Below, piece after piece: positions 26,073 to 58,251 of a stretch of 64,000 nt of DNA. Within the stretch, counting starts at the first letter, position 1. Each line of letters starts with the position of its first letter. A program made the position numbers and the translations under genes. Origin of the DNA: Macrostomum lignano (Eukaryota); contig NIVC01001185.1 of the NCBI GenBank assembly GCA_002269645.1, positions 1-64,000 of the forward strand, written 5' to 3'. Under the pieces are notes generated by a model that did not search any database, was not told the DNA's origin, and saw only the letters and a program-made list of their open reading frames with translations.

Positions 26073-27251
26073 TCTTAATACTAAAAGTGGTGCGATGTTT
26101 GTTTGTTTGTCTGTTTGTCTGTTTGTCGGTGTGTTGCAATTTTTCTCCTAGAATACTGGCAAGTCAGCGTCGAAAATTATTTGGGGAAACTGCAAATTGT
26201 CCGGGTCGGGCTATAGGCTATTTTAATATTTTATTTTCGATTGTTAAGATCCCTAAAAAAGCAGAAAACTGCAATCTTGACCTTTGATAATCTTATTTGT
26301 CCCCTCTTTCTGCTCGGAGCTGATAAAATGCATCAATTTTGATTGATTGCGCCATAAATTTCTCCTATCTCGCCAGTGCATTTCTCTCCAGTTGGGGGAT
26401 GGGGCGTTCTAAGTGACTGCGTGTGTACACTTGGACCCTGGCTCACTGGCGCACTGTATAGATGATTGCGCAATGATTTGGCTACTGTTAAGTTGTTCTG
26501 CCTTTCAACATGAAGCCCTGTGTATTGTGGGAGAGTGAACTTCATTGCATAACTCGCGAGTCGCTTTAACAGGCGGTGAGCGTACACTCGATATTTCAAT
26601 GCTTTAAATCGGAAAGTTGTAAACGCTAACTGCTCTTCGAGTTCTAAACTTTAAGAGAAAAGACTTATATTGCCGGAAAGAGCTTGCAACACTGAGTTTG
26701 GAGGTATAAGTTGTTTGCTTTAAATATGAAAACAAAAAGGACAGCATTCAAAAACTATTTCCAATCTTTTAACTTTCTGCAAAGATTGCACTTAGTTTCC
26801 CGAGACGTAATAGATAAAGTTGGGGAGAGGGTTCAACTTCTTACTGCCACTGTGTATTGGAGGGTTGATTTAGATTGCGCAATCATTTTGTTCACTTTAC
26901 CTGAGCCTGATACTGACTGAATGAGAAATCGGTTGCGCAATAAATTGATTCAATTAATTCAATATTCTTATCAGCGCCTTTCAACCCGCAGCTCTGTGCA
27001 GCTCTAACCCTAACCCTAACCCTAACCCTAACCCTAGCCACTGAATCCTGAGTTTAGTTCTGTTTGACGGAGAAAATTTTAATTGAGTCCAGTTTCACGG
27101 AGAGGATTTCTGTTCCGCGGAGAGGATTTCGATGGTGTTCAGTTTCGCGGAGAGGGGTTGGATGGTAGGATTCAGCTGATGAATTTCAGGGAATGGAATT
27201 CCGGTGATGGGAATTCTTCCCCTTTCTCCTCCAGAGGAGGAGTTGGCCTCG
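26073..27251 (+). mobile_element. Helitron-like unit 12 (subfamily C-like, no AG-rich tract)
   Basis: Starts TCTTAATACTAAAAGTGG; TAACCC tract 27005-27034; ends TTGGCCTCG. Confidence 0.7.
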
Positions 27252-33495: not shown

Positions 33496-34052
33496 ACAAC
33501 AACAACAACAACAAAATACATTGTCAGCCAGCCAGTCAAGCGTGGGGCCGGGCAATGTCAGAGGGCGCGTTTTAGGGCCTGGGCGCGAATGTACGTTGTA
33601 GGGCGCACCGCTAGCAGGGCTTGGGCGCGAATGTACGTTGTAGGGCGCACCGCTAGCAGTGCCTGGGGCGCCGGCATCAGCCAGCCGGCAGTCGACGAAG
33701 CGCCGAGTGCGCGCCTGCCCCCGCTGGTAGGGTGCCCCGGCATGTAGCGTCAGCAGCAGCACCTGCTGCGTGCACCGGCTGTGGACAGTACGACTCGGCT
33801 CGGATAAATATGGCCTGCCAGCTGAAGTCGGCACAACAGTTCGCTGGGACGGAACAGGCCGGTGCGGCGATAGAGTGCCGCATTGGTGACTCGCTCGTAG
33901 TAGCCGATCTTGAAGGCGGCGCGCAGCAGACCATCGTGCGCCGCATCGACCTACAGCTGCTCGAGCGAAATCGTCAGCGTCCAGGTATCGGCGTTGTACA
34001 ACAGAGGACGGCGGCTTAGCGTGCTTGGCTACGCCGACGATCTCGCCCTGCC
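33496..34052 (-). mobile_element. 5'-truncated RTE-like LINE remnant with an inverted 5' piece
   Basis: Minus strand (with frameshifts) reads LLYNADTWTLT...RVTNAALY...LQLAGH, typical of an RTE ORF C-terminus. It ends in a (TTG)n tail (33496-33514). 34003-34050 on the plus strand reads RRLSVLGYADDLAL (RT active-site motif). Confidence 0.75.
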
Positions 34053-34240: not shown

Positions 34241-34332
34241 GTAACTCATGAAAGTCATGTAAATCACGTGAGAATCACGAAAACGACATGGCAAAAAGCC
34301 GAATCTGTTACGTACCGATCTGGCCTTGTCAG

Positions 34333-36893
<2,561 letters not shown>

Positions 36894-37059
36894 ATATAGT
36901 AGCGCATCGGGCACGTTTTGATGCAACTTTGCAATCACGCTACTGTTAGTAGTTTTTGTTTAGGGAAATCTTAGTAACCGAGGTTGGTTAGGGGCTTTTC
37001 AAGTTTTATAGATATAGAATGGAGCTAGCTTTGCTCTTGATTAACCCGTCTTTCTGGTT

Positions 37060-37410: not shown

Positions 37411-38724
37411 AAATGAGGTAGAAATCCTGTTCCCTTCTGGAAAAAAAAATCGCAAAATTTTTCACCTGCCTAACAAAACATCACAATTTTTTATTTCGTT
37501 TTCTGCATGCTGACGCCGAATTTACGAAACTGACAGAGCTGACAGCTCACCAGCTGATAGTTGTGACTCTGACAGACTGCAATTGTACTGCGAAAAACCT
37601 GCAACAGTTGAAAGTTTTTTGTTACCATGGAGCGGAGAAAAACTGTAGACTAAACAGACTCTTTTTTGGTTGTCGAACAAAAATACACATGATTGCCTTC
37701 GATTTTAGATTTTTAACGGGTTGCTGTATTCCGTAGAATTATTTTTGCAGCCCCTTGGCACTTTCTGATTTTAGTTTTTTTGAGTGGCACCGGCTTGCAG
37801 AAGTCCAAAAGTGTTGTGAACAAACATTCGAATTGTAATAAAGAGACAACCAATGAAGTAAATCGTTTTCAATTCGGTAAGCACCATGGCACACAGAAAC
37901 TTTTTGTGTCGTTTTTGGGTTCGTGGCAACCGAACGGAATGAAAGAATTTTGTTGTGACAGTGCAACGTTGATTCAGTAACATGACTAGCCATTTTCAAT
38001 CCCCGTTGGGGCTTGCTATCCTAACTCCATCAATTAGTTGTTCCACACAGAAAACTTCACGAGGCCTTCTTTATCATGAAAATTTCCACTGTAGCATTAT
38101 TTGCCCTTTTTCTTATTTATTCCGATATCAATTTACGTCCCCTAGATAGCAAGCATCCTCCAATAGAAAGCATCCCCGATAGCAAATATCCCTAAATAGC
38201 AATCATCCCCCAAAAAGCAAGCATCTCCAAATAGCAAACATCTGTAACGGTTTTGAAATTCTGTAATTCAAATCTAGTTTATTTACATGGTGTATTTTAA
38301 CTTTATTCAGATCCTTAGCTGTTTGAATTATGTGCGTAATTTATTCTAGGGTTCTAATAATACGTATTTTGTTAATTTGGTTTCCGTTTCCAAGAAATGC
38401 GACTCATAATTTAAACATGTAAGTTCTAGTCTTTTCTGTAAGCGTGTGGCAGCCTTGGACGTAGATCAACTTAGCATGTACGTGAGATACAATAATTATA
38501 ATCAGAGCCGATCATCAGTGTACGCATTCGTACTAAGACAGTAAGATTCCTTATACTACGAGTATAGTAAATCGTCCAGGACTGACAGACGTAGCTGCTG
38601 AACCATACGTTGCTAATACTCTCCTTCACTAGTATTATTATAAATATACCGGACTCGTTACACATCCACCAAAGCAAGCAATCTCAGCACTCCTTTGTCA
38701 GCCATGAAACCTCAGAAATTCCTT

Positions 38725-38842: not shown

Positions 38843-39583
38843 AAGGTATCGCTATAACAACCCTGAAATTATTCCTTTAATCCCACAAAACAGACAGTCG
38901 TACTTTTAGCAGCCTGCAGTTATCCCCTTTGCATGTAGTCAGCAGTCCTCTCGGCTGTCTCGTCAGTCGCTTCACCAAACTGCGATGATCCTTTCAACAA
39001 TCACAAAACATTATCAGCATTTATTATGGCTCAATATTTAATATTCAATGAATATCTCAGCACATTACTCTATAGAGAACCTAAAACGAATACCATGCAC
39101 CCTTTACAGTGAGTCAGTTGCGACAGAAAATGTATAGTAATGAGTAAAAATATTAATAAACAATCTGTGAAAGCAACATAAATTTTCATACGTTTTTTAC
39201 TGTGTACTTTCGATTCGATGAATCGATACACAGGAATGAACAGTATTGCAGTGCTGACAACGGTAACAACAACAAAATACGCGGCCCTGCGAGCAAAAGG
39301 TCGCAGTTAGAGCAGGGCACGTCAGATGTAGCGCCGCAGAGCCTGGGAGCGAACAAAGTCCGCTCCGTTGGCAGTGTCGGGCGCCCGTTGACAATCGAAC
39401 AATGATTTGACAATGATGGATGCTCTGATGTTGAGCCAGCCAGGAAACTGTCGGGCGCAGTTTCGGTCAATAACATTGCTGCTGTAGCATGCATGATTTT
39501 AAAGTCTTTAACATCATTTTTACAAAGTAATCTAGAAAGCAACAGAAAAACAGCGAAACAGATTCGCAGTTCAGAAATATCAG

Positions 39584-41293
39584 TTACAGTATTCTGCAGC
39601 AGTATCGAAATTTTGATTCGTTTTCGTCAACGGCATCACGGGCAAAGTGGCCAGATTCTGCGTAGAGCAAGTCGCCTCCGTTGTATCCTTGGTTGTCATG
39701 CCCCTGCTCCGCCTGACCACCATTTGTGTGATTATTCACAAAGTACTCGCTCCTATCATCTACACTTTGCACTCTGTACTGCTCCTGCAACACCTGCTGT
39801 CTCTGCCGTTCCTGCTGCTGCTTCTGTCTTTGCTGCTCTTGCAATCTCTGTTGCTGTTCTAGCAACTGTTGCTGTTTCTGCTGTTCCTGCCATTGCTGTA
39901 ATCTTGGATTCTCTCGAAGCTGTTGCTCTCTTTGCTCCTGCAGCATCCTCTGCTTTTGCTGCTCCTGCAACATCCTCTGCTGCTTCTCCAGCATCTGCTT
40001 TCGCTGCTGCTCCTGCAAAATTCTCTGCTTTCGCTGCTGCTCCTGCAACATTCTCTGCTTTCGCTGCTGCTCCTGCAACATTCTCTGCTTTTGCTGCTGC
40101 TCCTGCAACATTCTCTGCTTTCGCTGCTGCTCCTGCAACATTCTCTGCTTTTGCTGCTCCTGCAACATCGTCTGCTTTTGCTGCTCCTGCAACATCCTCT
40201 GCTGCTCCTCCAGCATCTGCTTTCGCTGCTGCTCCTGCAACATCCTCTGCTTTCGCTGCTCCTGCAACATCTTCTGCTGCTGCTCCTGCAGAAGCTGCTT
40301 TCGCTGCTGCTCCTCCCGCATCTGCTTTCGCTGCTGCTCCTCCAGCATCTGCTTTCGCTGCTGCTCCAGCACCATACTCTGTTGCTGCTCCTCCAACATC
40401 CTCTGCTGCTGCTTCTGCAAAATCCTCTGCTGCTGCTCCTGCAGCTTCTGCTTTTTTTTACAAGCAACCCTAAGAGCTTCGATAGCATTCTCGTAATTAT
40501 TGGTTGGAACATAATGCAGGTGAAAGTTTCCTCGTTTTCTCGTGTACAGACAAATTCCTTTGCCAGTAAATGTTCGTCCGAATCCGTACTCATTCAGTTG
40601 CTGCACTTGTCTGATCTCAATATCCATCACAAAAATGTATCCCACATTGCTCAGCAACTGAGGCAGCTTCACGCCAACTAGACTCAAATTCCTACCAGAA
40701 TCGACAAAACTCAGACTGATGATGTCGAATGGTTGAGCCGTTAGCTTTCGGTCAAGCACAAAGTCCTCCATGGGCATTTCAATGAACTCGTGTCTCGATG
40801 TGTTGAAACACCAATCCGATGTGGCCTGTGCGAATTCGCTGTCGAAAGCGCTCCAGTCCCAGGGAAACGCGTCAACTCCAATGCAGCTCAGCTGCAGCAG
40901 CCTCCCACCACGCACCTGGTTAACCTCGCCTCTGTGTACAACATCTTTGATGGCTCTGACGACTCCAAGCAGGTCGCTGCCGGGACCGCAACCGAGCGAC
41001 AAGATCCGGATCTCCCGAGGCTGCGGCTCGCTGCAAACTGACTGCAGAAGTTGCTTCACCTCATCTCGTATTTTGGTCTGTACGAGTCTAGACTTGCGTA
41101 TAAACTCTTTTTGTGTATAGGCCTTGCGGAATTCCGGGTCGCTGTAGAATCTAAAGTCCTCTTTGTGCTTGGCATCAAGCCATTGCTGGTAAATTGGACA
41201 GTCCATGATCTTTTGCTCCGGCTCTACTCGTAGGAGCTCAGCTCTCTGCTTTGCATCTGCCTCCTTTTGATACGCAGACTTGTGCAAATACAT
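39584..41293 (-). CDS. Intronless 569-aa protein: class I SAM-dependent methyltransferase-like domain + ~220-aa Gln-rich repeat coil + C-terminal CCRIL (copy A, intact)
   Basis: Motif I ILSLGCGPGSD, acidic motif II CIGVD, motif IV-like FDIISLSF. QEQQ(R/Q)KQRML repeats. ATG at 41293; a paralog is present at 55839-57638. Confidence 0.85.
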   Translation of the reverse strand: MYLHKSAYQKEADAKQRAELLRVEPEQKIMDCPIYQQWLDAKHKEDFRFYSDPEFRKAYTQKEFIRKSRLVQTKIRDEVKQLLQSVCSEPQPREIRILSLGCGPGSDLLGVVRAIKDVVHRGEVNQVRGGRLLQLSCIGVDAFPWDWSAFDSEFAQATSDWCFNTSRHEFIEMPMEDFVLDRKLTAQPFDIISLSFVDSGRNLSLVGVKLPQLLSNVGYIFVMDIEIRQVQQLNEYGFGRTFTGKGICLYTRKRGNFHLHYVPTNNYENAIEALRVACKKKQKLQEQQQRILQKQQQRMLEEQQQSMVLEQQRKQMLEEQQRKQMREEQQRKQLLQEQQQKMLQEQRKQRMLQEQQRKQMLEEQQRMLQEQQKQTMLQEQQKQRMLQEQQRKQRMLQEQQQKQRMLQEQQRKQRMLQEQQRKQRILQEQQRKQMLEKQQRMLQEQQKQRMLQEQREQQLRENPRLQQWQEQQKQQQLLEQQQRLQEQQRQKQQQERQRQQVLQEQYRVQSVDDRSEYFVNNHTNGGQAEQGHDNQGYNGGDLLYAESGHFARDAVDENESKFRYCCRIL

Positions 41294-41838
41294 TTATTTC
41301 TTGGAAATTTCAGTTAAGTATCATAAGTGCACACAACTCGAAAGACGTACGCATTAATTTCCTTCTCTACCTCTAAAAACTCCACTGCAGAGTTTATACA
41401 CAACGCGTACATTAGCCAACCGGGCCGAAAGGAATGAGAAGACGCAGGGGTGGCGGCGAAAACTAGGGCAAAACGAGCCCAGCGAAAGCGAGTGTATTTG
41501 ACGCGAAATTGAAGTATTACAAGCAATGGAGTAAAAGCAGAGGGATAAAAACAGAACGGACAAGCATACAGGGAAAAAAATTTAGCCAAGCATGCCAACG
41601 CTGAGCGGCAGAACACGCGAATAAATGGGCCAGCGCGACCCCAACCCCCACCACCCCCACCCAGCGGGCAGAGGCACCGGTCCCGGTCAGCTAAAGCCGA
41701 TTACAGAGCCAGTAAACCGGTCCTGAGATCGCAACATTGGCCAACCGGGCCGAAAGGAACAAGGAGAAGACGCGGGGGGTGGCGGCGAAAAGGCGGGCGA
41801 AACGAGCCCAAAACTCCCAAGAAAACGAGAGGTGAAAG

Positions 41839-42800
41839 TTACACAGACGGAAGGTGGGACGCCAGCCGAAGCGGAAAGTACCGCTCTACCGCGCTGCTCG
41901 ACCAGTCGCCGACCCGCTTGATAGCGTCGACGGGGATGCCGGCATTCGCGGCGGACGTGGCGCCCCCCCCCGCCGCAACGAGTGTCCGGAAAAGTTGGCC
42001 GGCTCTGAAAATCCAGCCGCCTGGCAAAGGTGCGCGCGGTGAGCGGCGCGAGGGCTCCACGCCTGCGGGCCCCGAAAAGATGATGTTGATCATTTTGTGG
42101 ACGGTTGATGAGCAGCTGCTTCTCGAGCGCTGCAACTGGGCAAAGCCGATTGCCGGCTGGGAGCCGCGGCAAAAAGACTCGTTGCTGGCGCGCACCAAAC
42201 TGGTTTGTCTTCGACCTTGAAATGACGAGAACAACGCCGGCACTAGCCGGCCTGATGCAGCTCGCGCTGAGGTCTCGAAGGGGGTCAAACCGACCGGCGA
42301 CACACAGATTGGCCCGTCGTAGCATGGCCCACCAGCCAACAATGCAGGCGCACCAGAACGCGCAGTCACCGGGTTCCTCTGGCTGCAGTGCTCGGCACAG
42401 TCGCAGGAGGTCGGCTGGCAGCAACGCTTTCTTGCTCTTTGGGGCAGCGCCAAGGAGCCGTCGGGCTCCGGGCAGCGCGAGCTGTACCAGTGGCTGCTTG
42501 GTAGGGTCGGCCACACAGTTTGCCTTGTAGAACCAGGACACGGCTGCGAGGTGACAGGACAGGCTGCTGACGGAGAACAGTCGGTTTCCGGTCAGCACCG
42601 CCAGCTAGTTTTACACATCGGCACGCTGCGCTGACAGTGGCCGAACTCCATGGGCATCGCAGAACCGCAGCGAGGATGCGCACTGGGTGGCGTGGGCGGC
42701 GCTGGTTGAGCTTGCGAAGCCGCAGCCGAGCAGTTGGTGGGCGGACGAGCTGAGGCCAGGCACTGAGACCACAGGAGGCAGACCTGAAAAAGAAGGTGAG
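41839..42800 (-). pseudogene. Tyrosine recombinase of the Ngaro element (frameshifted)
   Basis: Motifs MLRRAN (R), SKTNQ (K), SGHSLRRGG|ATSA (HxxR; extra G in a G run at ~41963-41971), GDWSS and VERYF (Y). Confidence 0.88.
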
Positions 42801-42849
42801 AAGCAGCGGCAGGACTCAAGCAAGCAGATGCAGGCAAGCAGGTAGGCAC

Positions 42850-43485
42850 GTAGCAGGTGCCGTAGAAGCGAAAAATAAATTTAGCAAGCTGGCTAGGGTC
42901 GTTAGCTCTGGACAGCAGGTCCGCGAGGAGCTGAAAGCGGTCAGGCACGTGATACGCGCGCAAGATAATGTCACGCTGGATGCAGGTCAGAGTGACGAGC
43001 CTCTGCAGGTCGGCGATGCCGCGATGCTCGGCCGAGCTAGATTTGATGATGCCACAGGCAGCGGTGCTGTCCGTGTACACTGCAACGGAGCGGCCGCTGA
43101 GGGCCTCTTGATGCTTCAGGATAGCGACCAGAGGGGCGGCGCACTCCTTGAAGTTGATGTGGAGCTTTTCGAACTCGCTACCGCAGTCGAGTTGCCAGCT
43201 AATAAAAGCCAGGTCGAGTCACTGTAGTCGAAGTGCAGCACCGCACCGCCGCCTGCATAGCAGGCATCAGACTCGATAGCGGCGGCCGGCCAACGAGATG
43301 GCCAAGCGGACTTTGGCGGCAGAATGCTCAACGCGATCGTCCACCACTCCAGCTGAGACCTGAGCTCCACCGTAACGTCGGACGGACGGTCGGACGGATG
43401 CGTCAGGCTATTGGCGAGATCGATTAGCGGACGCAGGAAGGTTCGACCGTGCTGAGCGGTTGTGCACATATGGCTGATGCCCTAG
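42850..43485 (-). pseudogene. RNase H region of the Ngaro element (frameshifted)
   Basis: Motifs GRTFLR, LEWW, IESDAC, YTDSTAA and YHVP...LLADLLSR. Confidence 0.8.
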
Positions 43486-44374
43486 TGTTGTGCCCGGGTG
43501 CACTTGCACCGATGAGCAATCTCTGGCTCTCAGTCAAGTGTGCCCGGCGCTGCACTCCCCCCCCCCCCCCCGGCCGCGTGCCTGCGCCAACACCCCATTC
43601 TGTTTGCGTCAAACCCCCATCTGTCTGCGTCAAACCCCCCATTCTGTCTGCGTCAACCCCCCATTCTGTCTGCGTAAACCCCCCCCATTCTGTCTGCGTC
43701 AACCCCCCATTCTGTCTGCGTCAACCCCCCATTCTGTCTGCGTCAACCCCCCATTCTGTCTGCGTCAACCCCCTCCAGTTGCACCCACCCCACTGCCTGT
43801 TAGGCCAGCCGGCTTTGGCTGGCTGCGGCCCCAGTGCGCCCCCTCTCTCGCCCTGCGATTGGCTGGTGGTCCAGCCAATCGGTTTGTTTCCTCTCCCCTC
43901 CAATCGCGACCCCGACTTGTAACTTTTTCCTTGTTGGATAAGACGATCGTAATTTTGTCTAGCTGGGCTTGGGGTAGCGATACCCCAGGGCTTAACCAGC
44001 TAGCACAAATATAAATATATGTAGGAGCGGCAGTAGGGGAGGCATCTCTTTCCTTGGTTGAATTGTGCAAGTCACAGCCATAAGTCTAATACTACAATCT
44101 AGATACCTGTCTATTCTATAGACTGAAGAGAGAACATTGAGAGAAGCCAACCCTGCTGCCGCCACCGCTGTTACCCGAAGAAACAGAGTGAGTCGCGTGT
44201 CTTTCTTATTTGAGGGACTGGCGAGAATTAATCTGTGCAATAGGGACGGACTGATTAAGTCTCATGATACGATCCCCCGCTCAGAGTCCGAAGTCAGTCC
44301 GGCCAGTTGACTGACGCCATCTTCGGCTCGTTCACTGTGATAGTCAGGGTAGTGATCCAGCCTGTAGCACAACA
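43486..44374. mobile_element. Solo LTR (889 bp) of an unrelated LTR retrotransposon, with ~8 internal 22-23-bp repeats
   Basis: TGTTGTGC...GCACAACA termini; 4-bp TSD CTAG (43482-85, 44375-78). Removing it rejoins the RT/RNase H connection (QKLL|G..SHMCTT). Confidence 0.85.
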
Positions 44375-45112
44375 CTAGCAGCTTCTGCAACTCAGACTTT
44401 GACACGTCTTGCTGCGACAGGCAGGTGCGAACCAGGAACTGAAGCTTCCTGGCTTTGTCAGCTGGGAAAGAGAGGCTCGCTTACACGGTATCGATGTCTA
44501 TCCCCAGGAACCGCAGCTTGGTTGTTGGCGGCACAGATTTTCTCTTGTTGATGACGAATCCAAGCTCGGTGAGCAGGTTACGCAGCTCGCAGTAGGCTCG
44601 TTTGCACTCAGCTTCTCTGTCCTCGCCATGACAAGAAAATCATCTATGGTGGCCAGGAAGCCTTTGCGGCACATCATACGCCGAACCACTTGGGTGAGAC
44701 AATGGAAGATGCTGACAGAGGCACGACTGCTGAATGGTAGGCGCGTGTCCACTATGTAAGCTGAGCGCCCGTCACCAAAGTCCCAGTGGATCCCGGTGGC
44801 TTGGTAGCACTGCGGAAAAATGGGCACAGCACGGTAGGCGGACGCGATGTCAACCTTCGCCATGAACCAGCCCGGCTGCATCAACCTGATGGCCTCATCG
44901 ACAGAAGTGAAGTGGAGCTTGCGCTGCTGGGCGTAGTGATCGTTCAGGCTTTGGCCGTAAGGAACGGAGCAGTCGTGGATCAGCCGGATGCTGGCGCTGT
45001 CCTTAGGAATCGCGCCGAGCGGTATGACGTTCGCGATGATCTGCCCGACGTCGCTGTGGACTTGCCTGGGCTGCCTTCCGTTGATTTCGCGAGGGCTGTC
45101 CTGCAGTCCGAG
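44375..45112 (-). pseudogene. Reverse transcriptase region of the Ngaro element
   Basis: Motifs PLGAIPK...IRLIHDCS, KVDIASAYRAVPI, DTRLPF and IDDFL. Confidence 0.85.
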
Positions 45113-48100
45113 TGTTCGTTTTTTTTGGGACGAGTAAGAAAATTGATCGAGTCTCAGCCTTTAGCTTAACTCTGCAGACACTTGGTCTTTTCAATTATAT
45201 TTTGGCAACTCTTTAAGCCACCGAATTGAACTGTACAAATGTCCATAGACATCAATAGAATTTTCAGCCGTTGACGGCTACTAAGCAAAGTGCATTCTCT
45301 AATAAATAAAAGTTCATCACAGTGCTAACACTCCTTCCCATTAGTTAACAGCTAGGTAGGTACACCAAGCTTGCGGTACTCAAGTCGCCTTGGTACTTGC
45401 CGATGGCGATTACTTCTCCGAAGACCAGACTAGACTCTTGATCCGTGTGCACATGTTCTTCAGTCTCCATCTCCACCAGGTCATCGGAACCGGAACTCCT
45501 TGGCTTTGTCTGTTCACGATGGTATCGTCCACGCCTTCCGTCCTCCAGCTCAACGTCGACCACAACCTTTCCCTCTGTTGCCACCACTTCGCCAGACTTC
45601 CACTTTGTCATCTCGTTGTTGTAGGTTTTCACCCAGACTGGCTCACGTGCCAGAGAAAATGCAGGGGTGCGAAGTAGGTGACCTCTCATCAGCTCAGAGG
45701 GCGATTTTCCGGTCGTAGAATGTTTCGCGTTCCGGTATTGAAGCAGAAACCGGTCGACGCAACTCTGAAGGTCATCTTCTTCAGCGGCTCGGACGTGATT
45801 TTTTAAATCTCTCACAAAGCGCTCGGCCAGTCCATTTGACCTTGGATGATACGGTGGTGTGAGAACATGTCGGTAGTTGATTCCTTTTAACCAACCTTGC
45901 ATTTCTTTCGATACAAATTGAGGTCCATTGTCGGAAACAATAGTCACGGGCACGCCTTCTTGGGCGAACATTCTTCGCAGTCGCTTGATTGTCTCAGATG
46001 AAGTGGTTCCCTTAGTCACGTGAACTTCAGCCCATTTACTGAACGCATCAATCAGTACCAACATGTAGTTTCCTCCCTTCATAGGCCCTGCGTAGTCCAT
46101 GTGAACTCTTGACCAGCATTCGGTCTCATCCGGCCACGCAGTCCATTGTCGGGTGGCCCCATGATCCTTGTTTTCCTGGCACGAACAACATCCTTTCGCA
46201 TACTTTTCGATGTCTCGATCTACTTCAGGCCACCAGACGCATTGTCTAGCCATGGATTTCATCTTTTCTGGTCCGATGTGTCCTTCGTGCAGCAATCGCA
46301 AAGTTGCAGAACGCTCCTGCTTTGGTACAACCAGCCGAATACCTCTGTACAGCAATCCATTCTCGATGACTAACTCGTCCCTGAATCGGCTAAACTGTTG
46401 TAGTTCTCGAAGTCCTTCTGCATTCCAGCCAAACTTGACTTGAGCGAATAACTTCCGGAGCTCTGAATTCTCTTTCGATTGTCTTCTCAAACGCTCCTTG
46501 TTGATTGGAAAATCTAGTAGGCAGTCCTGCACTGAGCTAATGTCAAACTGCTCCCCTTCAGACGTGCTGTTCTGCAGTCTTGACAGGGCATCGGCCACGG
46601 GAATCTCAGCAGATCTCTTGCACTCAATGGCGTATTCGTAGCTCATCAAAGTGATTGCCCAGCGTTGCACTCTCGCTGCAGCAACAGTTGACAAGGATCT
46701 GCCAGGATCAAAGATGAACTTTAACGGTTGGTGGTCTGTGCGAATGACGAACTTGTGTCCCAGCAAATACTTGTATAAGCGCTTCACAGCCCATACAATG
46801 GCGAGGGCCTCGCGTTCAATTTGAGCATAGTTGCGCTCTGCTTGAGTCAGAGTTTTTGAACTGAATATTACGGGCCCGGACGACTGCTCGAGGACTGCAC
46901 CAAGTCCCGATGGTGACGCGTCAGTAGTGAGAACGATCTTATCTGATGGATCAAAAGGCTTGAGAGCGACTGCATTATGTAGTTCGTCCTTGATGCTCTG
47001 AAAGGCTCTCTGCTCGATTGGGCCCCATGCCCACTTCGTTCCTGACCTGGTCAGTTTCGTTAGAGGTTCTTTCAGGCTCGCGAGATTCTTGATACACCGT
47101 CCGTAGAAATCGACCATCTCGATAAATGACTGCAGCTGCTTGAGATTCTTTGGCTCTTCTAATCCTGCAATCTCCTTGGCTTTCTTTGGTGGTGGACGAA
47201 TGCCGTTTTCACTGATCTCATATCCCAGGAACATGATAGATGGCTTGTTAAAAGTGCATTTTTCCTCGTTAATGCTCAGTCCACTCTCCTTTAAAATTCG
47301 AAGCACATTGGACAGTCTGTTGTCATGACTCTGTTGGTTGAAACCCCACACAAGAATGTCATCTTGGTAGGAAATGACACCTTCTATGTTTAGAAGCAAC
47401 CTGTCCATGAATGACTGAAAAATTGCTGGTGCTTGCTTTACTCCATATGCCAATGCAGTGGGCCTGTATAAGCCGAACGGAGTGCTCCACGTCAGCATCA
47501 CGCTGCTGTCTTCATCCACCGGTACTTGGAGGTACGCATTTGATAGGTCCAACGTAGAGAATCGGCGGGCACGGCCTAGTTTTGACAGAACTTCGTCAAT
47601 TGTGGGCGTTGTTGACACCATGTCTTTCAGCAGTGGGTTGAGGGTAACCTTGTAGTCACCACAAATCCGAACCTTTCCAGACTGCTTTCGAACACAGACA
47701 ATGGGTGTAGCCCACTCGCTGGATTCCACCTTCTGGAGCTGTACAGCCTCTTCCATTCTCTTCAACTCGGCCTTGACATCGTCCTGAATCCCGTATGGAA
47801 TTTGCCGAGGTTTAAAAAAAATGGGCTTTGCTCCCGCCTCAATGGCCAATGATACAGAAAATCTTTTTACAGAGCACGCCGTTGTAGGATTCGAGCCGTC
47901 TTCCTCAGGCACCGTACATTTTGTAATAAAAGTGTAGAGGTCTGGCTCAAGGGCAGCAATCCAATCTAGGCCATAGATAGATTCGGCTTTTGGGTTGTCC
48001 ACCACAAACAGAGTTAGGTCGGAACTTACTGAGTTTAGCTTGGCGTTCACAATAGCTTCGCCTTTCACTAGCACTGGATCCCCTTGATACGCAGCAAATC

Positions 48101-49362
48101 GTCTGCTTGTGGGCCTTACATTTGCTGGTTCGAGTAGGCTTTGAAACACCGAGCTTGACACGAACGTTGAGCACGACCCGGTGTCCAGTAGCATCTTGAT
48201 TTTCGTACCATTGACTACTACATGTCGCGTTATCCTTCTGCTTCCACGATCATCTTCCGGCGTCATCATCGAGAAAATGTGCCCGACTTGATCAGCTGCA
48301 TCGTCGATTGCTCTGACTCTGCTCCTTGGATACCGTCCGCCTCCTTGTGACCATTTGTTGCTCGTTGAAGGCCGTTGTCCACCTTTGTTCAGTCCGCACC
48401 TGCAAACTGCTTTGAGATGACCAACCTTACCACACTGAAGGCATGTCTTAGTCCGGTGGTGGCACTGGTCCTTTGTATGTCCTTCCTTGCCGCAGCAGAA
48501 GCACTTGACTTGGCGCAATTGGCCGTTCTTCTGGTCGCTTTTCTGGTACGCTGGTTTCTGGGCTTTCGATGTCGAAGGAGGATCCGTCTTGACATGTAGA
48601 ATTTCGCCTCCTGAGATCTGTCTCTCGCCGCGACTTACGGCCTCGCATGCATTGGCCACCGTAGTTACTTTTTCCCACGTCAGATCTTTCAGTTTCTCCG
48701 TGAGCAACTTTCTGACGATCTCCTTGTTCGACAATCCGAAGATAAATTGGTCCCGCAGGCGGTCATTCAGTTCGGCGGTTGAAAAGCCGCAGTTCTCCGA
48801 ACCCAGTAGCAGCCTTCTTGCGTAGGCAGAAACGTCTTCGCCGTCGTCCTGCTTGAGGTGATGGAACGCGTACCGGTATGCAATCTCGGATTTCGCCGCT
48901 TTTGTCTCCTTGATCAGCTGAGTTTTCAGATCAGCGTAGGTCTTGGCGTCAGGCTTATCTGGCAATAGCGCGTCCGCCAACAGTGCGAAGGCCTTCTTGC
49001 CGAGATGTGCGATGAGGGCGAACTTCTGAGCGGTGTCATCCCACTTGTTCAGCTTGGAGACTGCTTCGAAGCGTTGGAACCAGCGCTCAATTTCCGCTGG
49101 GGCTTCTGTCTCCAGAGGCTCGATAAGACCAGCCGCCGTCGCCAGTGTTCGTTTTTTTGGGACGAGTAAGAAAATTGATCGAGTCTCAGCCTTTAGCTTA
49201 ACTCTGCAGACACTTGGTCTTTTCAATTATATTTTGGCAACTCTTTAAGCCACCGAATTGAACTGTACAAATGTCCATAGACATCAATAGAATTTTCAGC
49301 CGTTGACGGCTACTAAGCAAAGTGCATTCTCTAATAAATAAAAGTTCATCACAGTGCTAACA
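45113..49362 (-). mobile_element. Full-length Ty3/Gypsy LTR retrotransposon (Mag-like), very young
   Basis: LTRs 45113-45330 and 49146-49362 are identical except for one T in a homopolymer. TG...CA ends; 5-bp TSD CCGAG (45108-12, 49363-67). PBS TGGCGACGG below 49145; PPT TGGGAAGGAG next to the 3' LTR. Confidence 0.97.
45345..49145 (-). CDS. Gag-Pol polyprotein (gag with 2 CCHC knuckles, protease, RT, RNase H, integrase), single open frame
   Basis: Motifs CFCCGKEGHTKDQC and CLQCGKVGHLKAVC; LLDTGS; YQDDILV; TDASPSGLGAVL; HEGH...C..C; DYAGP; DNGPQF; NGLAERFV. The start codon is uncertain (first AUG at 48269). Confidence 0.95.
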   Translation of the reverse strand: MATAAGLIEPLETEAPAEIERWFQRFEAVSKLNKWDDTAQKFALIAHLGKKAFALLADALLPDKPDAKTYADLKTQLIKETKAAKSEIAYRYAFHHLKQDDGEDVSAYARRLLLGSENCGFSTAELNDRLRDQFIFGLSNKEIVRKLLTEKLKDLTWEKVTTVANACEAVSRGERQISGGEILHVKTDPPSTSKAQKPAYQKSDQKNGQLRQVKCFCCGKEGHTKDQCHHRTKTCLQCGKVGHLKAVCRCGLNKGGQRPSTSNKWSQGGGRYPRSRVRAIDDAADQVGHIFSMMTPEDDRGSRRITRHVVVNGTKIKMLLDTGSCSTFVSSSVFQSLLEPANVRPTSRRFAAYQGDPVLVKGEAIVNAKLNSVSSDLTLFVVDNPKAESIYGLDWIAALEPDLYTFITKCTVPEEDGSNPTTACSVKRFSVSLAIEAGAKPIFFKPRQIPYGIQDDVKAELKRMEEAVQLQKVESSEWATPIVCVRKQSGKVRICGDYKVTLNPLLKDMVSTTPTIDEVLSKLGRARRFSTLDLSNAYLQVPVDEDSSVMLTWSTPFGLYRPTALAYGVKQAPAIFQSFMDRLLLNIEGVISYQDDILVWGFNQQSHDNRLSNVLRILKESGLSINEEKCTFNKPSIMFLGYEISENGIRPPPKKAKEIAGLEEPKNLKQLQSFIEMVDFYGRCIKNLASLKEPLTKLTRSGTKWAWGPIEQRAFQSIKDELHNAVALKPFDPSDKIVLTTDASPSGLGAVLEQSSGPVIFSSKTLTQAERNYAQIEREALAIVWAVKRLYKYLLGHKFVIRTDHQPLKFIFDPGRSLSTVAAARVQRWAITLMSYEYAIECKRSAEIPVADALSRLQNSTSEGEQFDISSVQDCLLDFPINKERLRRQSKENSELRKLFAQVKFGWNAEGLRELQQFSRFRDELVIENGLLYRGIRLVVPKQERSATLRLLHEGHIGPEKMKSMARQCVWWPEVDRDIEKYAKGCCSCQENKDHGATRQWTAWPDETECWSRVHMDYAGPMKGGNYMLVLIDAFSKWAEVHVTKGTTSSETIKRLRRMFAQEGVPVTIVSDNGPQFVSKEMQGWLKGINYRHVLTPPYHPRSNGLAERFVRDLKNHVRAAEEDDLQSCVDRFLLQYRNAKHSTTGKSPSELMRGHLLRTPAFSLAREPVWVKTYNNEMTKWKSGEVVATEGKVVVDVELEDGRRGRYHREQTKPRSSGSDDLVEMETEEHVHTDQESSLVFGEVIAIGKYQGDLSTASLVYLPSC

Positions 49363-50745
49363 CCGAGGCCATGCCCGAACGCCAGAGCGGTGATCGAGAC
49401 CGCGTCCTGTTGTACAATTTTACAAATCTTTAGCTGTAGAGACACACTAAATGTAGTTGACTATAAATGGAACACATAATTTAATTAAACTTAAAAGTCC
49501 TTCTGTCATACATGTGTGTCTGTGAAAATAAAATTAGAGTTAAAAAAATTCAGTTAGCTTTCTTTTAGTGTTTTTTAATTATTAAAGTATATCAGCGTTC
49601 AAATGCTGATATGCCATCCCACACGAATGACTGTGTAGGCCGCGCGTTAAAGTGCGGCACGGGCCTTCTGCGCGTGGCAGCTTTGGCACGTGTGACCGAA
49701 CCGTGCCCTGCCACCCCCTGCAGCCCGTGACGTGTGCCTAGAAGGCGAGGACAGTAAATGGAGGAGAGAGCTAAAAACCCTGTCCCCGTAAAGTTAAATA
49801 AACTAGAACATCGGTCCGAGAGACTCCACCGATCTTTTCACTACGGGCCTGAGCTCGGCCGTAGGCTCCTGGCTACAGAAAAATGTAGCCCGAGCATTGA
49901 AATTGTTTTTGTGTTCCATCTTTTGCTGTCGTAGACAGAAGGTAGTGGATAAGTAGCAAAAATATCCGCTACAAAATGTAAACCACGCCAAATGTATCTA
50001 GGGATTAACCTTTAACCTTTAAACTTGAGGGATTAACCCCTCAAAGTCCCCCAAAAATTATATATAATGGTCCACTCTATTCATCATATCTCCAATGACA
50101 AAGTGATAAAGGTATGGAAGAGAGTGGTGACAGCTGGGTTTATGCATTTTCTAATTTATGCATTGCGACAGACAAGTGTGCAGAAGGGGGGATCATCCAG
50201 AGGGCAAACATCGGGAGGCAAACGTCGGCGGGCAAAGGTCGGCTGTCAAACATGCGGTGGGCAAAATGTCGGCGGACTGACGTCGGCAAGACAAAAACGT
50301 CTGACGGATGAAATTTCGGTGGGCAAATGCTCCTCCTCCCGTGGGCGAGGGCAGTGAAGTTGCTGTATACATGTCGGCGCAAATAAATTTTATATACGTG
50401 GCCAATCATATAACGACACGTCTTCAAAATGAACTGCATGGCGTCGCCCCCAAAGATGCTACCCCTGATAAATTGAGACGAAAAGCCTGTCGTTGACTGT
50501 CAATTACATATGTAACCCTACATCTAGCTACGAGTGTACAAATTTACAACGCACCCATCATTGGCTCGTCAGTTTCATTGGTTAATTTGAACAGCCAAAC
50601 TGCCTCTAGCTGCATATATGCGAGTACGAGCGTATGTATCTCATCAGAAAAAAGTTTGTAACTCTGCCGAGTTACCATGGTATACCAACAAGTTTCTCAA
50701 GTTATCTAACCAGTACAGTCTGGAATCTAGATATTTGTCTGAAAC

Positions 50746-52758
<2,013 letters not shown>

Positions 52759-52896
52759 ATATAATAGCGCATCGGGCACGTTTTGATGCAACTTTGCAAT
52801 CACGCTACTGTTAGTAGTTTTTGTTTGGGGAAATGTAAGTATTAAAAGTTAGTTAGGAATTTTTTAGTTTTGGTAGATATAGAATAGAGCTAGCTT

Positions 52897-53215
52897 GGAC
52901 GGGAGAAGAGATTCGAAACCAAGAATCAAAACCAAGGTTTTGTCTCGCATAGAGACGCCTAACCGCAGTACCCCTGTGACACTTGTCTCTGCCTGGTCGA
53001 AAGCTTGTCATGAGTTAGTAGGCTGGGTTGGAGGGTAATAGTGGATCGGGAAGGGCTGTGGGTAGCTGTATAGGAAGGCAGGCCTATACCTGTTCCAGTT
53101 GGTGCTCTGACGGTCCCCCTCGGAGTGCCCTCTGAGCGAACAGCAAGCGACTCTATTAAAGCTGGAGTGTGCCAGAACCAGGACTGAGTCTGAGCAGGAC
53201 GAGACCGTTGGCACG
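52897..53215 (-). mobile_element. Probable LINE 3' end fragment
   Basis: Shares the terminal GGACGGGAGAAGAGATTCGAAACCAA with the LINE end at 53791. Confidence 0.35.
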
Positions 53216-53767
53216 GTCCTAATAAAAATGGCGGGTTGGCGAAGCGAAGGGTGAAACAGTCCCGGCGATTAGCCCTCCTACCGCAAGAGACTGTCAGGCA
53301 AGAGTACCCGGGGTTTAGTTGGGGGGGAGGCTCCTTCGGGTTGCCACGGCCGTGGGGGCGGTCATACGATCGGTTTTTTTGGCTTATCTAACCCTGGAGA
53401 AGGCACGGGCTTCCCTGATTGGTTCACTCAACCCCTTCTGGCCCCGGGGAGGTTTTGATCTGTTTGACAAGAGTACCCGGGGGTGGTGGGTGGTCGGCCC
53501 CAGCATGGTAGCCACGGCTCTCGGCCTTCGGGCCAACCCTAATCTGCAGGGGTTTACTAACCAGGTTTTTTGGGCACGGGCTTCCTGACTGGTTCGTCGA
53601 ACCACTGTCACTGTCCCTCGGGGAGGTTTTGATTTGTCATTTGCTCGATGTACAGTCCTCTTTAGCCTAATTCAGCTTTCAGTGTACATTAGTACACTCC
53701 CAACCTGGAACTTAATTTATCTCTAATGGCGTAAGAGCCTACTCTATGGCTGAGGCGCCGGAATCAC

Positions 53768-54170: not shown

Positions 54171-54820
54171 AAAACAGCCATAGCTTATGACTGATTAAAA
54201 AAAGCGGGTGGAAAGCATGTTCTCTGGAATAGGCTCGTAGCATCGCAACATTTTTTCACCTGTCTAACAAAAAATCACAAGTTTTTATTTCGTTTTCGGC
54301 ATGTTGACGCTGAAAGTCACGAAACTGACAGAGCTGACAGCTCACTAGCTGATTATTTGCGACTTTGCCTGGCTTACAATTGCACTGCAAAAATCGTGAA
54401 ACAGTTGAAAGTTTCTTGTTACCATGGAGCGGATAAAAAAACTGTAGACTAAACAAAACTGTTTTTTTTATGTCGAAGAGATGCGCATGATTGCTTTCAA
54501 TTTCGGATTTTTTAACGCGGCTTGCGGTATCTGTAGAATTAATTTTTGCAGTTTTTAAGAAAAAATGTTCTGAACAATATAATTGAAAGTGTAATAAAAA
54601 ACAACCAATGAAGTCAAGCGTTTTCGATTCGTTACCACCACAGCACACAAAAACTATTTTGTGGTGGGGGTTGGTGACTATTGACTAGAATCTGAGAGAC
54701 TTATGTAGAGGCCAGGACACTTATTGAGATCAGGACACTGCATGGTATTGAGATCAAGACCCTGTTCTTAACAGCATCAGTATTTAGATCAAGACAACTT
54801 GAGATCAGGACAATGCTTTT

Positions 54821-55428
54821 GAGATCAGGACACTGCTTTTGAGATCAGGACACTGCTTTTGAGATCAGCACACTGCTTTTGAGATCAGGACACTGCTTTT
54901 GAGATCAGGACACTGCTTCTGAGTTCAGGACACTGCTTTTGAGATCAGGACACTGCTTTTGAGATCAGGACACTGCTTTTGAGATCAGGACACTGCTTTT
55001 GAGATCAGGACACTGCTTTTGAGATCAGGACACTGCTTCTGAGTTCAGGACACTGCTTTTGAGATCAGGACACTGCTTTAGAGATCAGGACACTGCTTTT
55101 GAGATCAGGACACTGCTTTTGAGATCAGGACACTGCTTCTGAGTTCAGGACACTGCTTTTGAGATCAGGACACTGCTTTTGAGATCAGGACACTGCTTTT
55201 GAGATCAGGACACTGCTTTTGAGATCAGGACACTGCTTTTGAGATCAGGACACTGCTTTTGAGATCAGGACACTGCTTTTGAGATCAGGACACTGCTTCT
55301 GAGATCAGGACACTGCTTCTGAGATCAGGACACTGCTTTTGAGATCAGGACACTGCTTTTGAGTTTAGAACACTGCTTCTGAGTTTAGGACACTGCTTCT
55401 GAGTTTAGGACACTGCTTCTGAGATCAG
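54821..55428. repeat. Minisatellite, 20-bp unit GAGATCAGGACACTGCTTTT x~30, with degenerate copies from ~54714
   Basis: Direct reading; no spacers. Confidence 0.97.
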
Positions 55429-55838
55429 AAAAATCCATAAAGGCCAATGCTTGTAGAGATACCCAGGCACTTCTCTATAGATCTTGATATTTATCTGGGT
55501 TTCGGGTACTGCTCAAAGGACTCTGGTACTTCTCAAGAAATCCACAAACTACTTTAGAAACCCTGAAGCAAATACCATGCACATTTCCAGCGAGTCAGTA
55601 GAGACAGTAAACGTATAGTAATGAGTAAAAGTATTAATAAAAAAACGGGAAAAGCAACATCAATATTAAAACGTTTTTCACAATTTACTTTCGGTTCTAT
55701 ACCTCGATACACAGCAATGAAGTATTACAGTGCTGTGTAGCATGCATTATTTTAATGTCTGTAACATCATTTTTGTTACGTAAACTAGAAAGTAACAGAC
55801 AAACAGCGAAACAGACTAGAATTTCTGCAATATATCAG

Positions 55839-57638: not shown

Positions 57639-58251
57639 TTATTTCTTGGAAATTCCAGTCAAGTATCAGTAGTGCACATAATGAGCACAATATCTACTCA
57701 TTAATCTCTGTTCTCAGCCGAGTTTACATATAGGCCCTTACAGTAACGGTAAAGTGCGCCAAATTTTCAGCCAGGCGTATTTTTTTGTATCCAATAGCTC
57801 TTTAGTAGAACGCACGGCCTACAGGTTGCAGAAGCGCAAAGTGGAGACTCTCTTTATGACCTCAGAAAGTCTTATCGTATTGAAACATAACCCACCCAAA
57901 TTGTCTCTTAATTTAGCCATAGTACGAGCTACAATATAGTATATGCTATATTATTACCACAGAATATACCCATACTCTAAGGGCGTAAAAGGGAAATCAG
58001 AGGGTGCCGTCGTGCTGGAGGAGCTGGATTAGGTGACAAACAAAATTAATAAAGTCTGTGACACGTTAGGGAATTTTCGAAATGGATTGATTTGAACTCA
58101 TTTTTACGAGCATAGCATCAGCTTTGATGTCAATTTATTATAACAAAGCACAAGCTACAATGCTTGAGTGATGCATTGAAAATGAAAAGAACCAAACGAA
58201 TCTATCAATCATTGTTTATGGGCCATTTTGTTGTCAAGCGATTGCGTTTCG

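Follow-up and report, generated by a model that had tools for sequence, protein, structure and literature searches.

The minus strand of the window (the whole stretch of 64,000 nucleotides that was analysed) contains two related copies of a gene, which are referred to here as copy 1 and copy 2. Copy 1 is an intact open reading frame (ORF) that begins with an ATG, has an in-frame TAA immediately 5' of this codon and ends with the residues ...KFRYCCRIL*. A methyltransferase-like domain, a Gln-rich repeat and a tail containing CCRIL follow one another in its uninterrupted frame of 569 aa, and the ORF listing and the sequence thus bear out the first-pass annotation of this DNA, which had described a single intronless ORF with a motif I, a block of Q/E/R/K/L residues and an RYCCRIL* end. 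The paralog ending in RCCCRIL* that was also mentioned there corresponds to copy 2. The main features of this region are as follows.

39045–39583, minus strand: 3' flank common to both copies, about 540 bp, 79–81% identical to that of copy 2 (alignment)
39584–41293, minus strand: copy 1, intact ORF of 569 codons, with a TAA stop at 39584–39586 (ORF listing)
39587–39601, minus strand: CCRIL, comprising the CaaX box C566-R-I-L569 and the adjacent upstream Cys565; the stop codon follows directly after L569
39587–39772, minus strand: unique tail of 62 aa (aa 508–569), rich in G/D/N, with 81% nucleotide identity to copy 2
39773–40456, minus strand: Gln-rich coding minisatellite of 228 aa (aa 280–507), examined by TRF, composition and Fourier analysis
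40508–41188, minus strand: predicted class I SAM-methyltransferase-like domain (aa 36–262), the stretch that can be aligned to a Macrostomum lignano homolog
40516–41065, minus strand: gene-conversion tract of 550 nt over the methyltransferase core, differing from copy 2 at one (synonymous) position
40871–40888, minus strand: SCIGVD (aa 136–141), at the end of predicted strand beta-2, in invariant columns of the family
40973–41005, minus strand: motif I, ILSLGCGPGSD (aa 97–107), the putative GxGxG SAM-binding loop, invariant in both window copies and the flatworm homologs
41337–45110, minus strand: degenerate retroelement, 43 bp upstream of the copy 1 ATG, with a reverse transcriptase (RT)-like fragment and frame-shifted ORFs
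55839–57638, minus strand: copy 2, ending ...SKSRCCCRIL*

Sequence motifs and structural modelling indicate that the N-terminal part forms a genuine but divergent class I SAM-methyltransferase-like domain, for which SAM binding and catalysis are predicted. The Gly-rich loop of motif I (h-h-x-h-G-x-G-x-G, after strand beta-1) is present as RILSLGCGPGSD (aa 96–107), and in a profile search of the PDB it pairs with motif I of RNMT, VLDLGCGKGGDL. When the two copies were aligned with their homologs, the invariant columns were concentrated on LSLGCGPGS, SCIGVD, FDI..LSFV and G.IF..D. The predicted strand E102–109 of the AF2 model described below corresponds to aa 131–138 of the ORF, which places SCIGVD141 at the strand end, and D141, as the acidic residue after beta-2, presumably contacts the ribose hydroxyls of SAM, a role that we assign from its position and from general knowledge of class I methyltransferases. 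Against the Pfam family Methyltransf_23 (PF13489), copy 1 (18.5 bits, E = 0.0018) and copy 2 (18.7 bits) scored below the curated gathering threshold of 27 bits, whereas the M. lignano homologs P0001 and P0007 passed it (28.5 and 27.8 bits, respectively). All five matches at E ≤ 1 in the PDB profile search were methyltransferases, and four of them were the mRNA cap N7-methyltransferase RNMT, aligned on motif I, with the best E value of about 0.04 denoting marginal sequence similarity; a single-sequence phmmer search of the PDB gave only noise (E > 0.5).

An AlphaFold model from the single sequence had a pLDDT of 40.8, and the AF2 model based upon a three-sequence alignment (A2) was also of low confidence (pTM 0.65, pLDDT 58.8), with its elements following the order beta1-alphaA...beta6-beta7 of class I methyltransferases. 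When this model was used in Foldseek, all of the PDB matches at E ≤ 1e-3 (46/46) had the class I methyltransferase fold, with TM scores of only 0.30–0.38; they included DOT1L, vaccinia D1, spermidine synthase, CheR1 and one entry named 'a methyltransferase complex'. The SAM-methyltransferase fold proposed in the first-pass annotation is thus supported by the Pfam result for the homolog, by the topology of the AF2 model and by the Foldseek matches. With the class I enzymes (Methyltransf_23, DOT1L, RNMT/vaccinia D1, CheR, spermidine synthase and NNMT), copy 1 shares motif I and FD..h.S on beta-4 and appears to share the acidic residue after beta-2 and, by prediction, the seven-strand order with a beta6-beta7 hairpin; however, its sequence similarity to them is marginal, and its subfamily and substrate class are not assignable.

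The relatives of this gene are few. A phmmer search with aa 1–280 against 1.84 billion representative proteins identified the M. lignano protein A0A1I8FYA5 (P0001; E = 1.8e-9), and BLASTP of copy 1 against the M. lignano homolog showed 29% identity over 207 aa (E = 3e-16). The multi-exon gene family of M. lignano to which this protein belongs was the sole real relative in this collection, a marginal match to plant SABATH being one further phmmer result. No representative in it was more than 50% identical to the copy 1 protein, an exact look-up in a collection of 15 billion sequences gave no record of the 569-aa product, and there were zero matches in NCBIfam and, at the gathering threshold, in Rfam across the window. 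The earlier statement that the architecture corresponds to no described family therefore stands, since the matches comprise one Macrostomum gene family and the marginal SABATH protein. Word-indexed homolog searches returned nothing, whether the query was the N-terminal domain or the methyltransferase region of M. lignano; likewise, zero relatives emerged when contigs from viruses, prokaryotic genomes and metagenomes were scanned for the DNA pattern of alignment A2, exhaustive HMMER searches found none of viral, bacterial, archaeal or metagenomic origin, and the viral matches in Foldseek were generic methyltransferases (8–14% identity). The gene family is lineage-restricted and apparently confined to macrostomid flatworms.

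The M. lignano relatives (A0A1I8FYA5, A0A267EYB4, A0A1I8J7Q8 and the BOX15_Mlig012580 genes) are uncharacterised 'Methyltransf_25/23 domain-containing proteins'. They are 29–33% identical to copy 1 over about 205–220 aa, which cover the whole methyltransferase-like core and the following helix (Y..A[IV].ALR), and the SAM-binding motifs are invariant between them. In contrast to copy 1, these proteins are 726–1004 aa long, carry an extra N-terminal region of about 430 aa, and end in ...SKTVSD or ...SKTVTE. The Gln repeat is lacking from this only homolog outside the window, and so is the terminal Cys motif, whose absence from homologs had been named in the first-pass annotation as evidence against its proposal. 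Their genes contain at least 11 exons, whereas copy 1 is uninterrupted, although the methyltransferase core of the relatives is itself encoded by a single exon of about 1 kb; copy 1 also lacks the intron that follows ...CLVYRKCE in the relatives, together with about 26 adjacent codons. Synteny with the M. lignano locus, which was considered on the basis of short matches at 33665–33896, was rejected, because in our reading of the alignment this segment resembles the C-terminal portion that is conserved in LINE-type reverse transcriptases, and hence a repeat.

The two copies arose by segmental duplication, in tandem. The collinear duplicated block that holds both of them also includes the segments 34354–37031 (paired with 51363–52896) and 37449–37750 (paired with 54242–54551), and it extends into the common 3' flank, where a 227-bp segment of copy 1 (39256–39482) is missing in copy 2. 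The reading frame of copy 2 contains two in-frame stops, at codon 9 (57612–57614) and codon 416 (56391–56393). The flanks of the conversion tract differ between the copies by 8% (5') and 19% (3'), and the near identity of the tract is significant versus these flanks (Fisher p = 6e-10 and 1e-22). Between the copies, omega was 0.48 at the N-terminus and 0.60 in the tail (p = 0.052 for both combined), indicating that purifying selection is only marginal.

Upstream of the genes, homology between the copies ends at the retroelement, which may have displaced the promoter of copy 1. The RT-like fragment of this element matches RVT_1 with E = 0.008, and its frame-shifted ORFs read, in our own interpretation, like a tyrosine recombinase, an identity that Pfam and PDB searches with the ORFs at 41687–42598 and 41839–42516 left unconfirmed. 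Upstream of copy 2 there is no such retroelement, but a different 450-bp spacer and a small unrelated ORF, and no match to this region was found beyond the retroelement/Gypsy insertions that adjoin copy 1; hence, these insertions do not simply interrupt a promoter region common to both copies. An exact look-up of the product of the THAP transposase ORF gave no record.

The Gln-rich repeat is built of units of 27 or 30 nt, encoding 9–10 aa (e.g., QEQQRKQRML; TRF), and it consists of 42% Q, 13% E, 13% R, 11% L, 9% K and 7% M, with no Gly and one Pro as helix breakers in its 228 aa. Pairs of E with K/R number 18 at i+3 and 17 at i+4, versus two each at i+1 and i+2. This region had been taken for a coiled-coil stalk; however, heptad (3.5-residue) hydrophobic periodicity with a continuous a/d seam was absent from the repeat of both copies by Fourier analysis. 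At 3.5, 3.6 and 3.67 residues, the power of the hydrophobic indicator was 0.00, 0.03 and 0.02, respectively, in copy 1 and 0.02, 0.03 and 0.12 in copy 2, versus peaks at 8.35–9.05 residues. The hydrophobic residues form adjacent doublets (Met-Leu or Leu-Leu) that are spaced 6–9 residues apart, and it is this recurrence, every 8–10 residues, together with the missing heptad pattern, that speaks against the coiled-coil stalk.

Because of the lack of heptad periodicity and of Gly, and the E-to-K/R pairs at i+3/i+4, the repeat is most plausibly viewed as more like a single helix or a low-complexity/flexible spacer than a heptad coiled coil; it could equally be disordered, or self-associating like the polyQ-type coiled coils. 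Charged single alpha-helix (SAH, ER/K) spacers are found in myosin VI/X and caldesmon. The repeat resembles them in being long and nearly free of Gly and Pro, in its E-to-K/R pairs at i+3/i+4 and in the lack of a hydrophobic heptad seam, but it differs from them in its composition (35% charged and 42% Gln, with a net charge of +20) and in its Met-Leu/Leu-Leu doublets every ~9 residues; in classical SAH domains, the charged fraction is higher than 35%. The repeat periods are all multiples of 3 in both copies. The arrays of the two copies consist of completely different units, those of copy 2 being of 27, 60 and 75 nt and up to 100% identical, and the presence of units that are 97–100% identical indicates that slippage or unequal exchange took place very recently. 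In the ORF listing, the copy 1 repeat is also open in several further frames, on both strands, so that a long ORF across it is by itself no evidence of coding.

Prenyl anchors typically occur on small GTPases, lamins, G-gamma subunits and a few enzymes, and no class I methyltransferase known to us has a CaaX box. Substrates of geranylgeranyltransferase I (GGTase-I) have a Cys at -4, an aliphatic residue at a2 and Leu or Phe as X at the extreme C-terminus. The CRIL ending of copy 1 satisfies this rule (Cys at -4, Ile at a2 and Leu at X), as the first-pass annotation had noted, and the upstream Cys is placed as in RhoB. In the -CINCCKVL end of RhoB, the Cys of the CaaX box, C193, carries an isoprenoid and the neighbouring C192 a palmitoyl group, and the C-terminal peptide of eight residues suffices for membrane targeting of GFP (PMC2780327). 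Copy 1 shares with RhoB the ending CC-[K/R]-[V/I]-L; however, RhoB, a small GTPase, has another palmitoyl Cys at -8, whereas the motif of copy 1 comes after an acidic tail rich in Gly/Asn, in a protein of methyltransferase-like type. Among the 407 stop-to-stop segments of at least 60 aa in the window, C-x-[ILVM]-[LF] endings were observed only in the two homologous ORFs, versus chance expectations of 0.77 for CxaL and 0.033 for CCxaL (about 8e-5 per ORF for the latter). It had also been suggested that this motif was kept while its neighbours diverged. CCRIL is indeed present in both copies, with a synonymous change (TGC>TGT) in the first Cys and a stop that differs (TAA>TGA) at the same position, but its retention does not exceed chance, the probability of at most one change in 15 nt being 0.20 at the 18.8% nucleotide divergence of the tail. 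The tail as a whole is no better conserved between the copies (81%) than the non-coding 3' flank (79–81%).

The explanation that we favour, tentatively and with slightly less than even confidence, is that this locus represents a lineage-restricted animal gene, most likely of a macrostomid flatworm, in two tandem segmental duplicates, of which copy 1 is intact and combines a divergent class I methyltransferase with a Gln spacer and a CC-R-I-L tail, while copy 2 would be a decaying duplicate with two nonsense codons whose methyltransferase core was recently homogenised with that of copy 1 by gene conversion. The product is possibly a lipid-tethered methyltransferase. If so, Cys566 would be geranylgeranylated by GGTase-I, the -RIL tripeptide would then be removed and the new C-terminus carboxymethylated, and Cys565 would receive a palmitoyl group, as its counterpart in RhoB does. 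Such an anchor would keep the catalytic domain at the cytoplasmic side of a membrane, with the repeat determining how far from it the domain lies (up to about 30 nm). A bolder version, in which copy 1 is the first prenylated and palmitoylated class I methyltransferase and its minisatellite encodes a fast-evolving single-alpha-helix 'ruler' of up to ~30 nm whose repeat number tunes the reach of the enzyme, appears improbable to us. If it is made and lipidated, the protein would represent an unusual way of localising a methyltransferase, and a natural example of a helical spacer that is encoded by a minisatellite and evolves quickly in length. The present evidence mainly concerns a lineage-restricted gene family in which duplication, gene conversion, turnover of repeats and pseudogenisation are under way; both the C-terminal motif and the 'coiled coil' are suggestions at the sequence level, which fail statistical tests of conservation.

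A less probable, but still substantial, competitor accepts the methyltransferase-like domain as real and regards the remainder as fortuitous: the locus would be a young or decaying duplicate, maybe unexpressed or pseudogenising, with a 3' half that is an expanded CAG/CAA-rich minisatellite and a CCRIL that arose by chance, without lipidation or a stalk. The two nonsense codons of copy 2 and omega values of 0.5–0.6 that are not significantly below 1 agree with this account, as do a tail that diverges at the rate of the non-coding flank, a P of 0.20 for retention of CCRIL, arrays that share no units between the copies and contain some that are 97–100% identical, and several other frames that are open across the repeat on both strands. 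It also fits the lack of a repeat and of a CaaX box in the M. lignano homologs, of a database entry for the copy 1 protein by exact look-up and representative search, and the position of the retroelement 43 bp from the copy 1 ATG. It accounts less readily for the maintenance of one frame over 1.7 kb of copy 1, of which 186 nt belong to the non-repetitive tail, for repeat periods that are all multiples of three in both copies, for the per-ORF chance of CCxaL of about 8e-5, and for a stop retained at the same position (TAA>TGA) next to a synonymous change in the first Cys.

A lineage-restricted gene duplicated with its surroundings, as favoured above, also has to be weighed against two readings that derive the ORF from elsewhere. 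That it is a retrogene or was acquired horizontally, as had been proposed from its lack of introns, is decidedly unlikely. The uninterrupted frame compared with at least 11 exons in the relatives, the missing intron after ...CLVYRKCE with its adjacent codons, and homology between the copies that starts only 43 bp upstream of the ATG are what one could cite for it. However, the methyltransferase core of the relatives is likewise one exon of ~1 kb, the copies lie within a larger collinear duplicated block with about 540 bp of 3' flank, no poly(A) tract was seen in the 3'-flank alignment where their homology ends (~39045), and phmmer found no close parent gene among the 1.84 billion representative proteins. 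Viral, bacterial, archaeal and metagenomic relatives were also absent from the exhaustive HMMER and DNA-pattern scans, the viral Foldseek matches were generic, and the relatives found are only multi-exon flatworm genes. The least probable reading, to which we give very little credence, makes the ORF a part of the adjacent tyrosine-recombinase retroelement, which would be DIRS-like with a methyltransferase-like domain. The RT-like fragment and the tyrosine-recombinase-like ORFs do lie directly upstream of the ATG on the same strand, and DIRS1-type elements carry a methyltransferase domain. In those elements, however, this domain is located between RNase H and the recombinase and not beyond the terminal repeats; here, no ORF is common to copy 1 and the retroelement, the flatworm relatives are ordinary multi-exon genes, and copy 2 is preceded not by such an element but by its own spacer and small ORF.

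The first-pass annotation placed copy 1 exactly (39584..41293), and its description (motif I, repeat and RYCCRIL* end) was accurate; by the ORF listing of the window, copy 1 is a minus-strand open reading frame (ORF) of 569 aa; an in-frame TAA lies immediately 5' of the ATG. The paralog reported to end in RCCCRIL*, here termed copy 2, was also present, and it carries two in-frame stops that had gone unnoticed, a nonsense change in codon 9 (CAA to TAA, 57612-57614) and a stop at codon 416, within the repeat (56391-56393). The parts of the two copies, the duplicated blocks and the differences between copies 1 and 2 are as follows.

Copy 1, aa 97-107: motif I, ILSLGCGPGSD
Copy 1, aa 280-507: Gln-rich repeat, by composition
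Copy 1, final 62 residues: non-repetitive tail, ending RYCCRIL*
55839-57638 (-): copy 2, ending RCCCRIL*
34354-37031 and 51363-52896: duplicated block
37449-37750 and 54242-54551: duplicated block
39045-41336 and 55533-57681: duplicated block with both ORFs
First 228 nt of the gene: 19 differences
Next ~550 nt, the methyltransferase core (40516-41065): 1 difference, synonymous
213-nt tail: 40 differences

The N-terminal domain is very probably a genuine, divergent class I methyltransferase fold, assignable to no substrate class. Copy 1 matched the Pfam family Methyltransf_23 at E=0.0018 with 18.5 bits, which is under the cut-off of 27, and the threshold of this family was reached by two Macrostomum lignano homologs, P0001 and P0007. 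Run exhaustively against 1.84 billion representative proteins, phmmer returned two matches to the domain, the best being P0001 (A0A1I8FYA5, E=1.8e-9), one of six near-identical proteins of this flatworm, and the second a plant SABATH methyltransferase (E=7e-4), matched on motif I. Residues 36-255 could be aligned with the M. lignano homologs, and the invariant columns (LSLGCGPGS, SCIGVD, FDI..LSFV and G.IF..D) are, judged by their sequence, classical SAM-binding elements. All PDB entries matched by the family profile were methyltransferases (motif I, E~0.04). The structure predicted by AlphaFold upon a shallow alignment (pLDDT 58.8, pTM 0.65) has its strands and helices in the order expected for class I methyltransferases. 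This fold is shared by all 46 PDB entries that Foldseek matched with E<=1e-3, at TM-scores of just 0.30-0.38; they comprise DOT1L, vaccinia D1, spermidine synthase, CheR1 and one 'a methyltransferase complex', and NNMT follows slightly above E 1e-3. The earlier methyltransferase call is supported by the homology to P0001 and agrees with the predicted topology and these Foldseek matches.

Both methyltransferase-like ORFs lie within one collinear segmental duplication, through which copies 1 and 2 arose, and their homology extends from 43 bp 5' of the ATG to ~540 bp beyond the stop. Their divergence is very unequal along the gene, the core contrasting with the flanking parts at p=6e-10 and p=1e-22. 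As synonymous differences are not removable by selection, the near-identical core (40516-41065) reflects recent gene conversion.

The repeat (Gln 42%, Glu 13%, Arg 13%, Leu 11%, Lys 9% and Met 7%) carries little weight as coding evidence, because several further frames are open there on both strands in the ORF listing of the window. Tandem Repeats Finder identified it as a coding minisatellite with periods of 27/30 nt in copy 1 and of 27, 60 and 75 nt in copy 2, where the units are 92-100% identical; these different periods indicate that the arrays were rebuilt independently after divergence, always in multiples of three. The repeat has no Gly and one Pro in copy 1 and neither residue in copy 2. 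A 'coiled-coil stalk' had been proposed, but the hydrophobic residues form ML/LL doublets, one per 8-10 residues, and a canonical heptad coiled coil is unsupported because hydrophobic Fourier power at 3.5-3.67 residues is about zero. The E-to-K/R pairs cluster at i+3/i+4, in which the repeat resembles single-alpha-helix spacers; classical single-alpha-helix domains have a charge density above that of the Gln-rich repeat. It is better described as a Gln-rich, probably helical minisatellite spacer, although it may instead be disordered or self-associate in the manner of polyQ.

The mechanism that we tentatively place foremost is that copy 1 is a lipid-tethered methyltransferase. At its C-terminus, C566-R-I-L meets the GGTase-I substrate rule, which is established knowledge. 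The chance of a CCxaL ending is ~8e-5 per ORF, and the two paralogs account for all endings of this type among the window's 407 ORF ends. With the adjacent Cys565, CRIL mirrors the -CCKVL of RhoB, which carries an isoprenoid on its CaaX Cys193 and a palmitoyl group on Cys192, and whose terminal octapeptide alone is enough for membrane targeting of reporters (PMC2780327). The main rival, which is somewhat less likely, is that a real methyltransferase-like domain resides in a young or decaying duplicate, the repeat and the ending being fortuitous. The suggestion that the motif is kept while its neighbours diverge holds in that CCRIL occurs in both copies, but retention of its 15 nt has P=0.20 and the tail (81% identity between the copies) has diverged like the non-coding 3' flank (79-81%). 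Omega between the copies is 0.60 in the tail and 0.48 in the unconverted N-terminus (combined p 0.052). The first-pass annotation had also staked the motif on its presence in homologs, and the M. lignano proteins end in ...SKTVSD or ...SKTVTE, with no terminal Cys. Conservation lends little support to a lipid-anchor motif; the putative anchor is a reasonable prediction, motif conservation being no better than chance.

Retroposition or horizontal transfer, which had also been suggested as the origin of the gene, is improbable. The gene of the M. lignano relative comprises at least 11 exons, its methyltransferase core being confined to a single ~1-kb exon, and the 67-bp intron 3' of this exon is absent from the window gene. 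Against a retrogene, no poly(A) tract is apparent in the copy 1/copy 2 alignment where the shared 3' flank ends, and phmmer found no close parent gene among the 1.84 billion representative proteins; against horizontal transfer, no viral, prokaryotic or metagenomic relatives were found by phmmer of representative proteins, Foldseek or scans of contigs. Both origins are therefore unsupported. Mobile elements abound in the window, which is animal DNA. That the ORF is borne by a retroelement is very unlikely. The neighbouring gene segments and elements are as follows.

34326-36900 and 51449-52760 (+): duplicated ALK/LTK glycine-rich-domain-like exon segments (PF12810, E=2e-8)
59039-59434 and 61003-61446 (-): CAP-domain (cysteine-rich secretory protein/PR-1) exon-like ORFs (second, E=2.9e-7)
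58252-58485 (-): 77-aa ORF (MAAVRSAGSRMSEYVEPPEG...), ~600 bp upstream of copy 2, same strand
10520-12964 (-): intact 814-aa THAP9/P-element-type transposase ORF with THAP, TNP-like RNase H and GTP-binding insertion domains
41337-45110 (-): degenerate retroelement that contains an RT-like fragment (RVT_1, E=0.008)
45111-49363 (-): Gypsy LTR retrotransposon with an unbroken 1293-aa gag-pol ORF and LTRs of 212-221 bp

The ALK/LTK-like segments are broken by long (GACA)n-type microsatellites, whose reading as TDRQ repeats enlarges the ORFs. The CAP-like ORFs jointly point to an intron-containing host gene adjoining copy 2. An AATAAA-containing stretch follows the 77-aa ORF, which may be a small neighbouring gene; nothing corresponding to this ORF lies upstream of copy 1.

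Positions 1-30000 hold a complex repeat array with related units of ~2.4 kb and strong positive GC skew; two copies of a 4.96-kb block within it (2280-7229 and 21221-26175) are 98.9% identical. The transposase ORF sits inside this array, whose long Ser/Leu-rich minus-strand 'ORFs' look like repeat by-products. The Gypsy element is a recent insertion, since its LTRs are 99.5-100% identical, and the nearest database pol is merely 67-71% identical. The frame-shifted ORFs of the degenerate retroelement, ending ...GDWSSSAVERYF, read like a tyrosine recombinase, with no confirmation from Pfam or PDB; direct repeats of 45-80 nt, 325 nt apart, lie near the end of this element, which also has a 22-nt tandem array (43567-43799).

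A 505-bp segment (52936-53429) is 90% identical to a stretch within intron 1 of a M. lignano methyltransferase-family copy (locus L005, 6314-6812), is missing from the equivalent locus L006, and is probably a small mobile element that both genomes share. Taken with the sole homolog, it is the chief sign of taxonomic origin and suggests Macrostomum or a near relative. Short matches of 33665-33896 (85-97% identical) occur at L005 14221-14409, L006 18756-18944 and L007 (a further such locus) 5773-5961; synteny 3' of the methyltransferase genes was rejected, as they resemble the conserved C-terminal region of LINE-type reverse transcriptases (RVTNAALYR...) and are most likely a common repeat. Two tandem arrays have ~20-bp register steps and copies 85-95% identical: 54713-55428, between duplicated blocks, and 58572-58935, 5' of copy 2.
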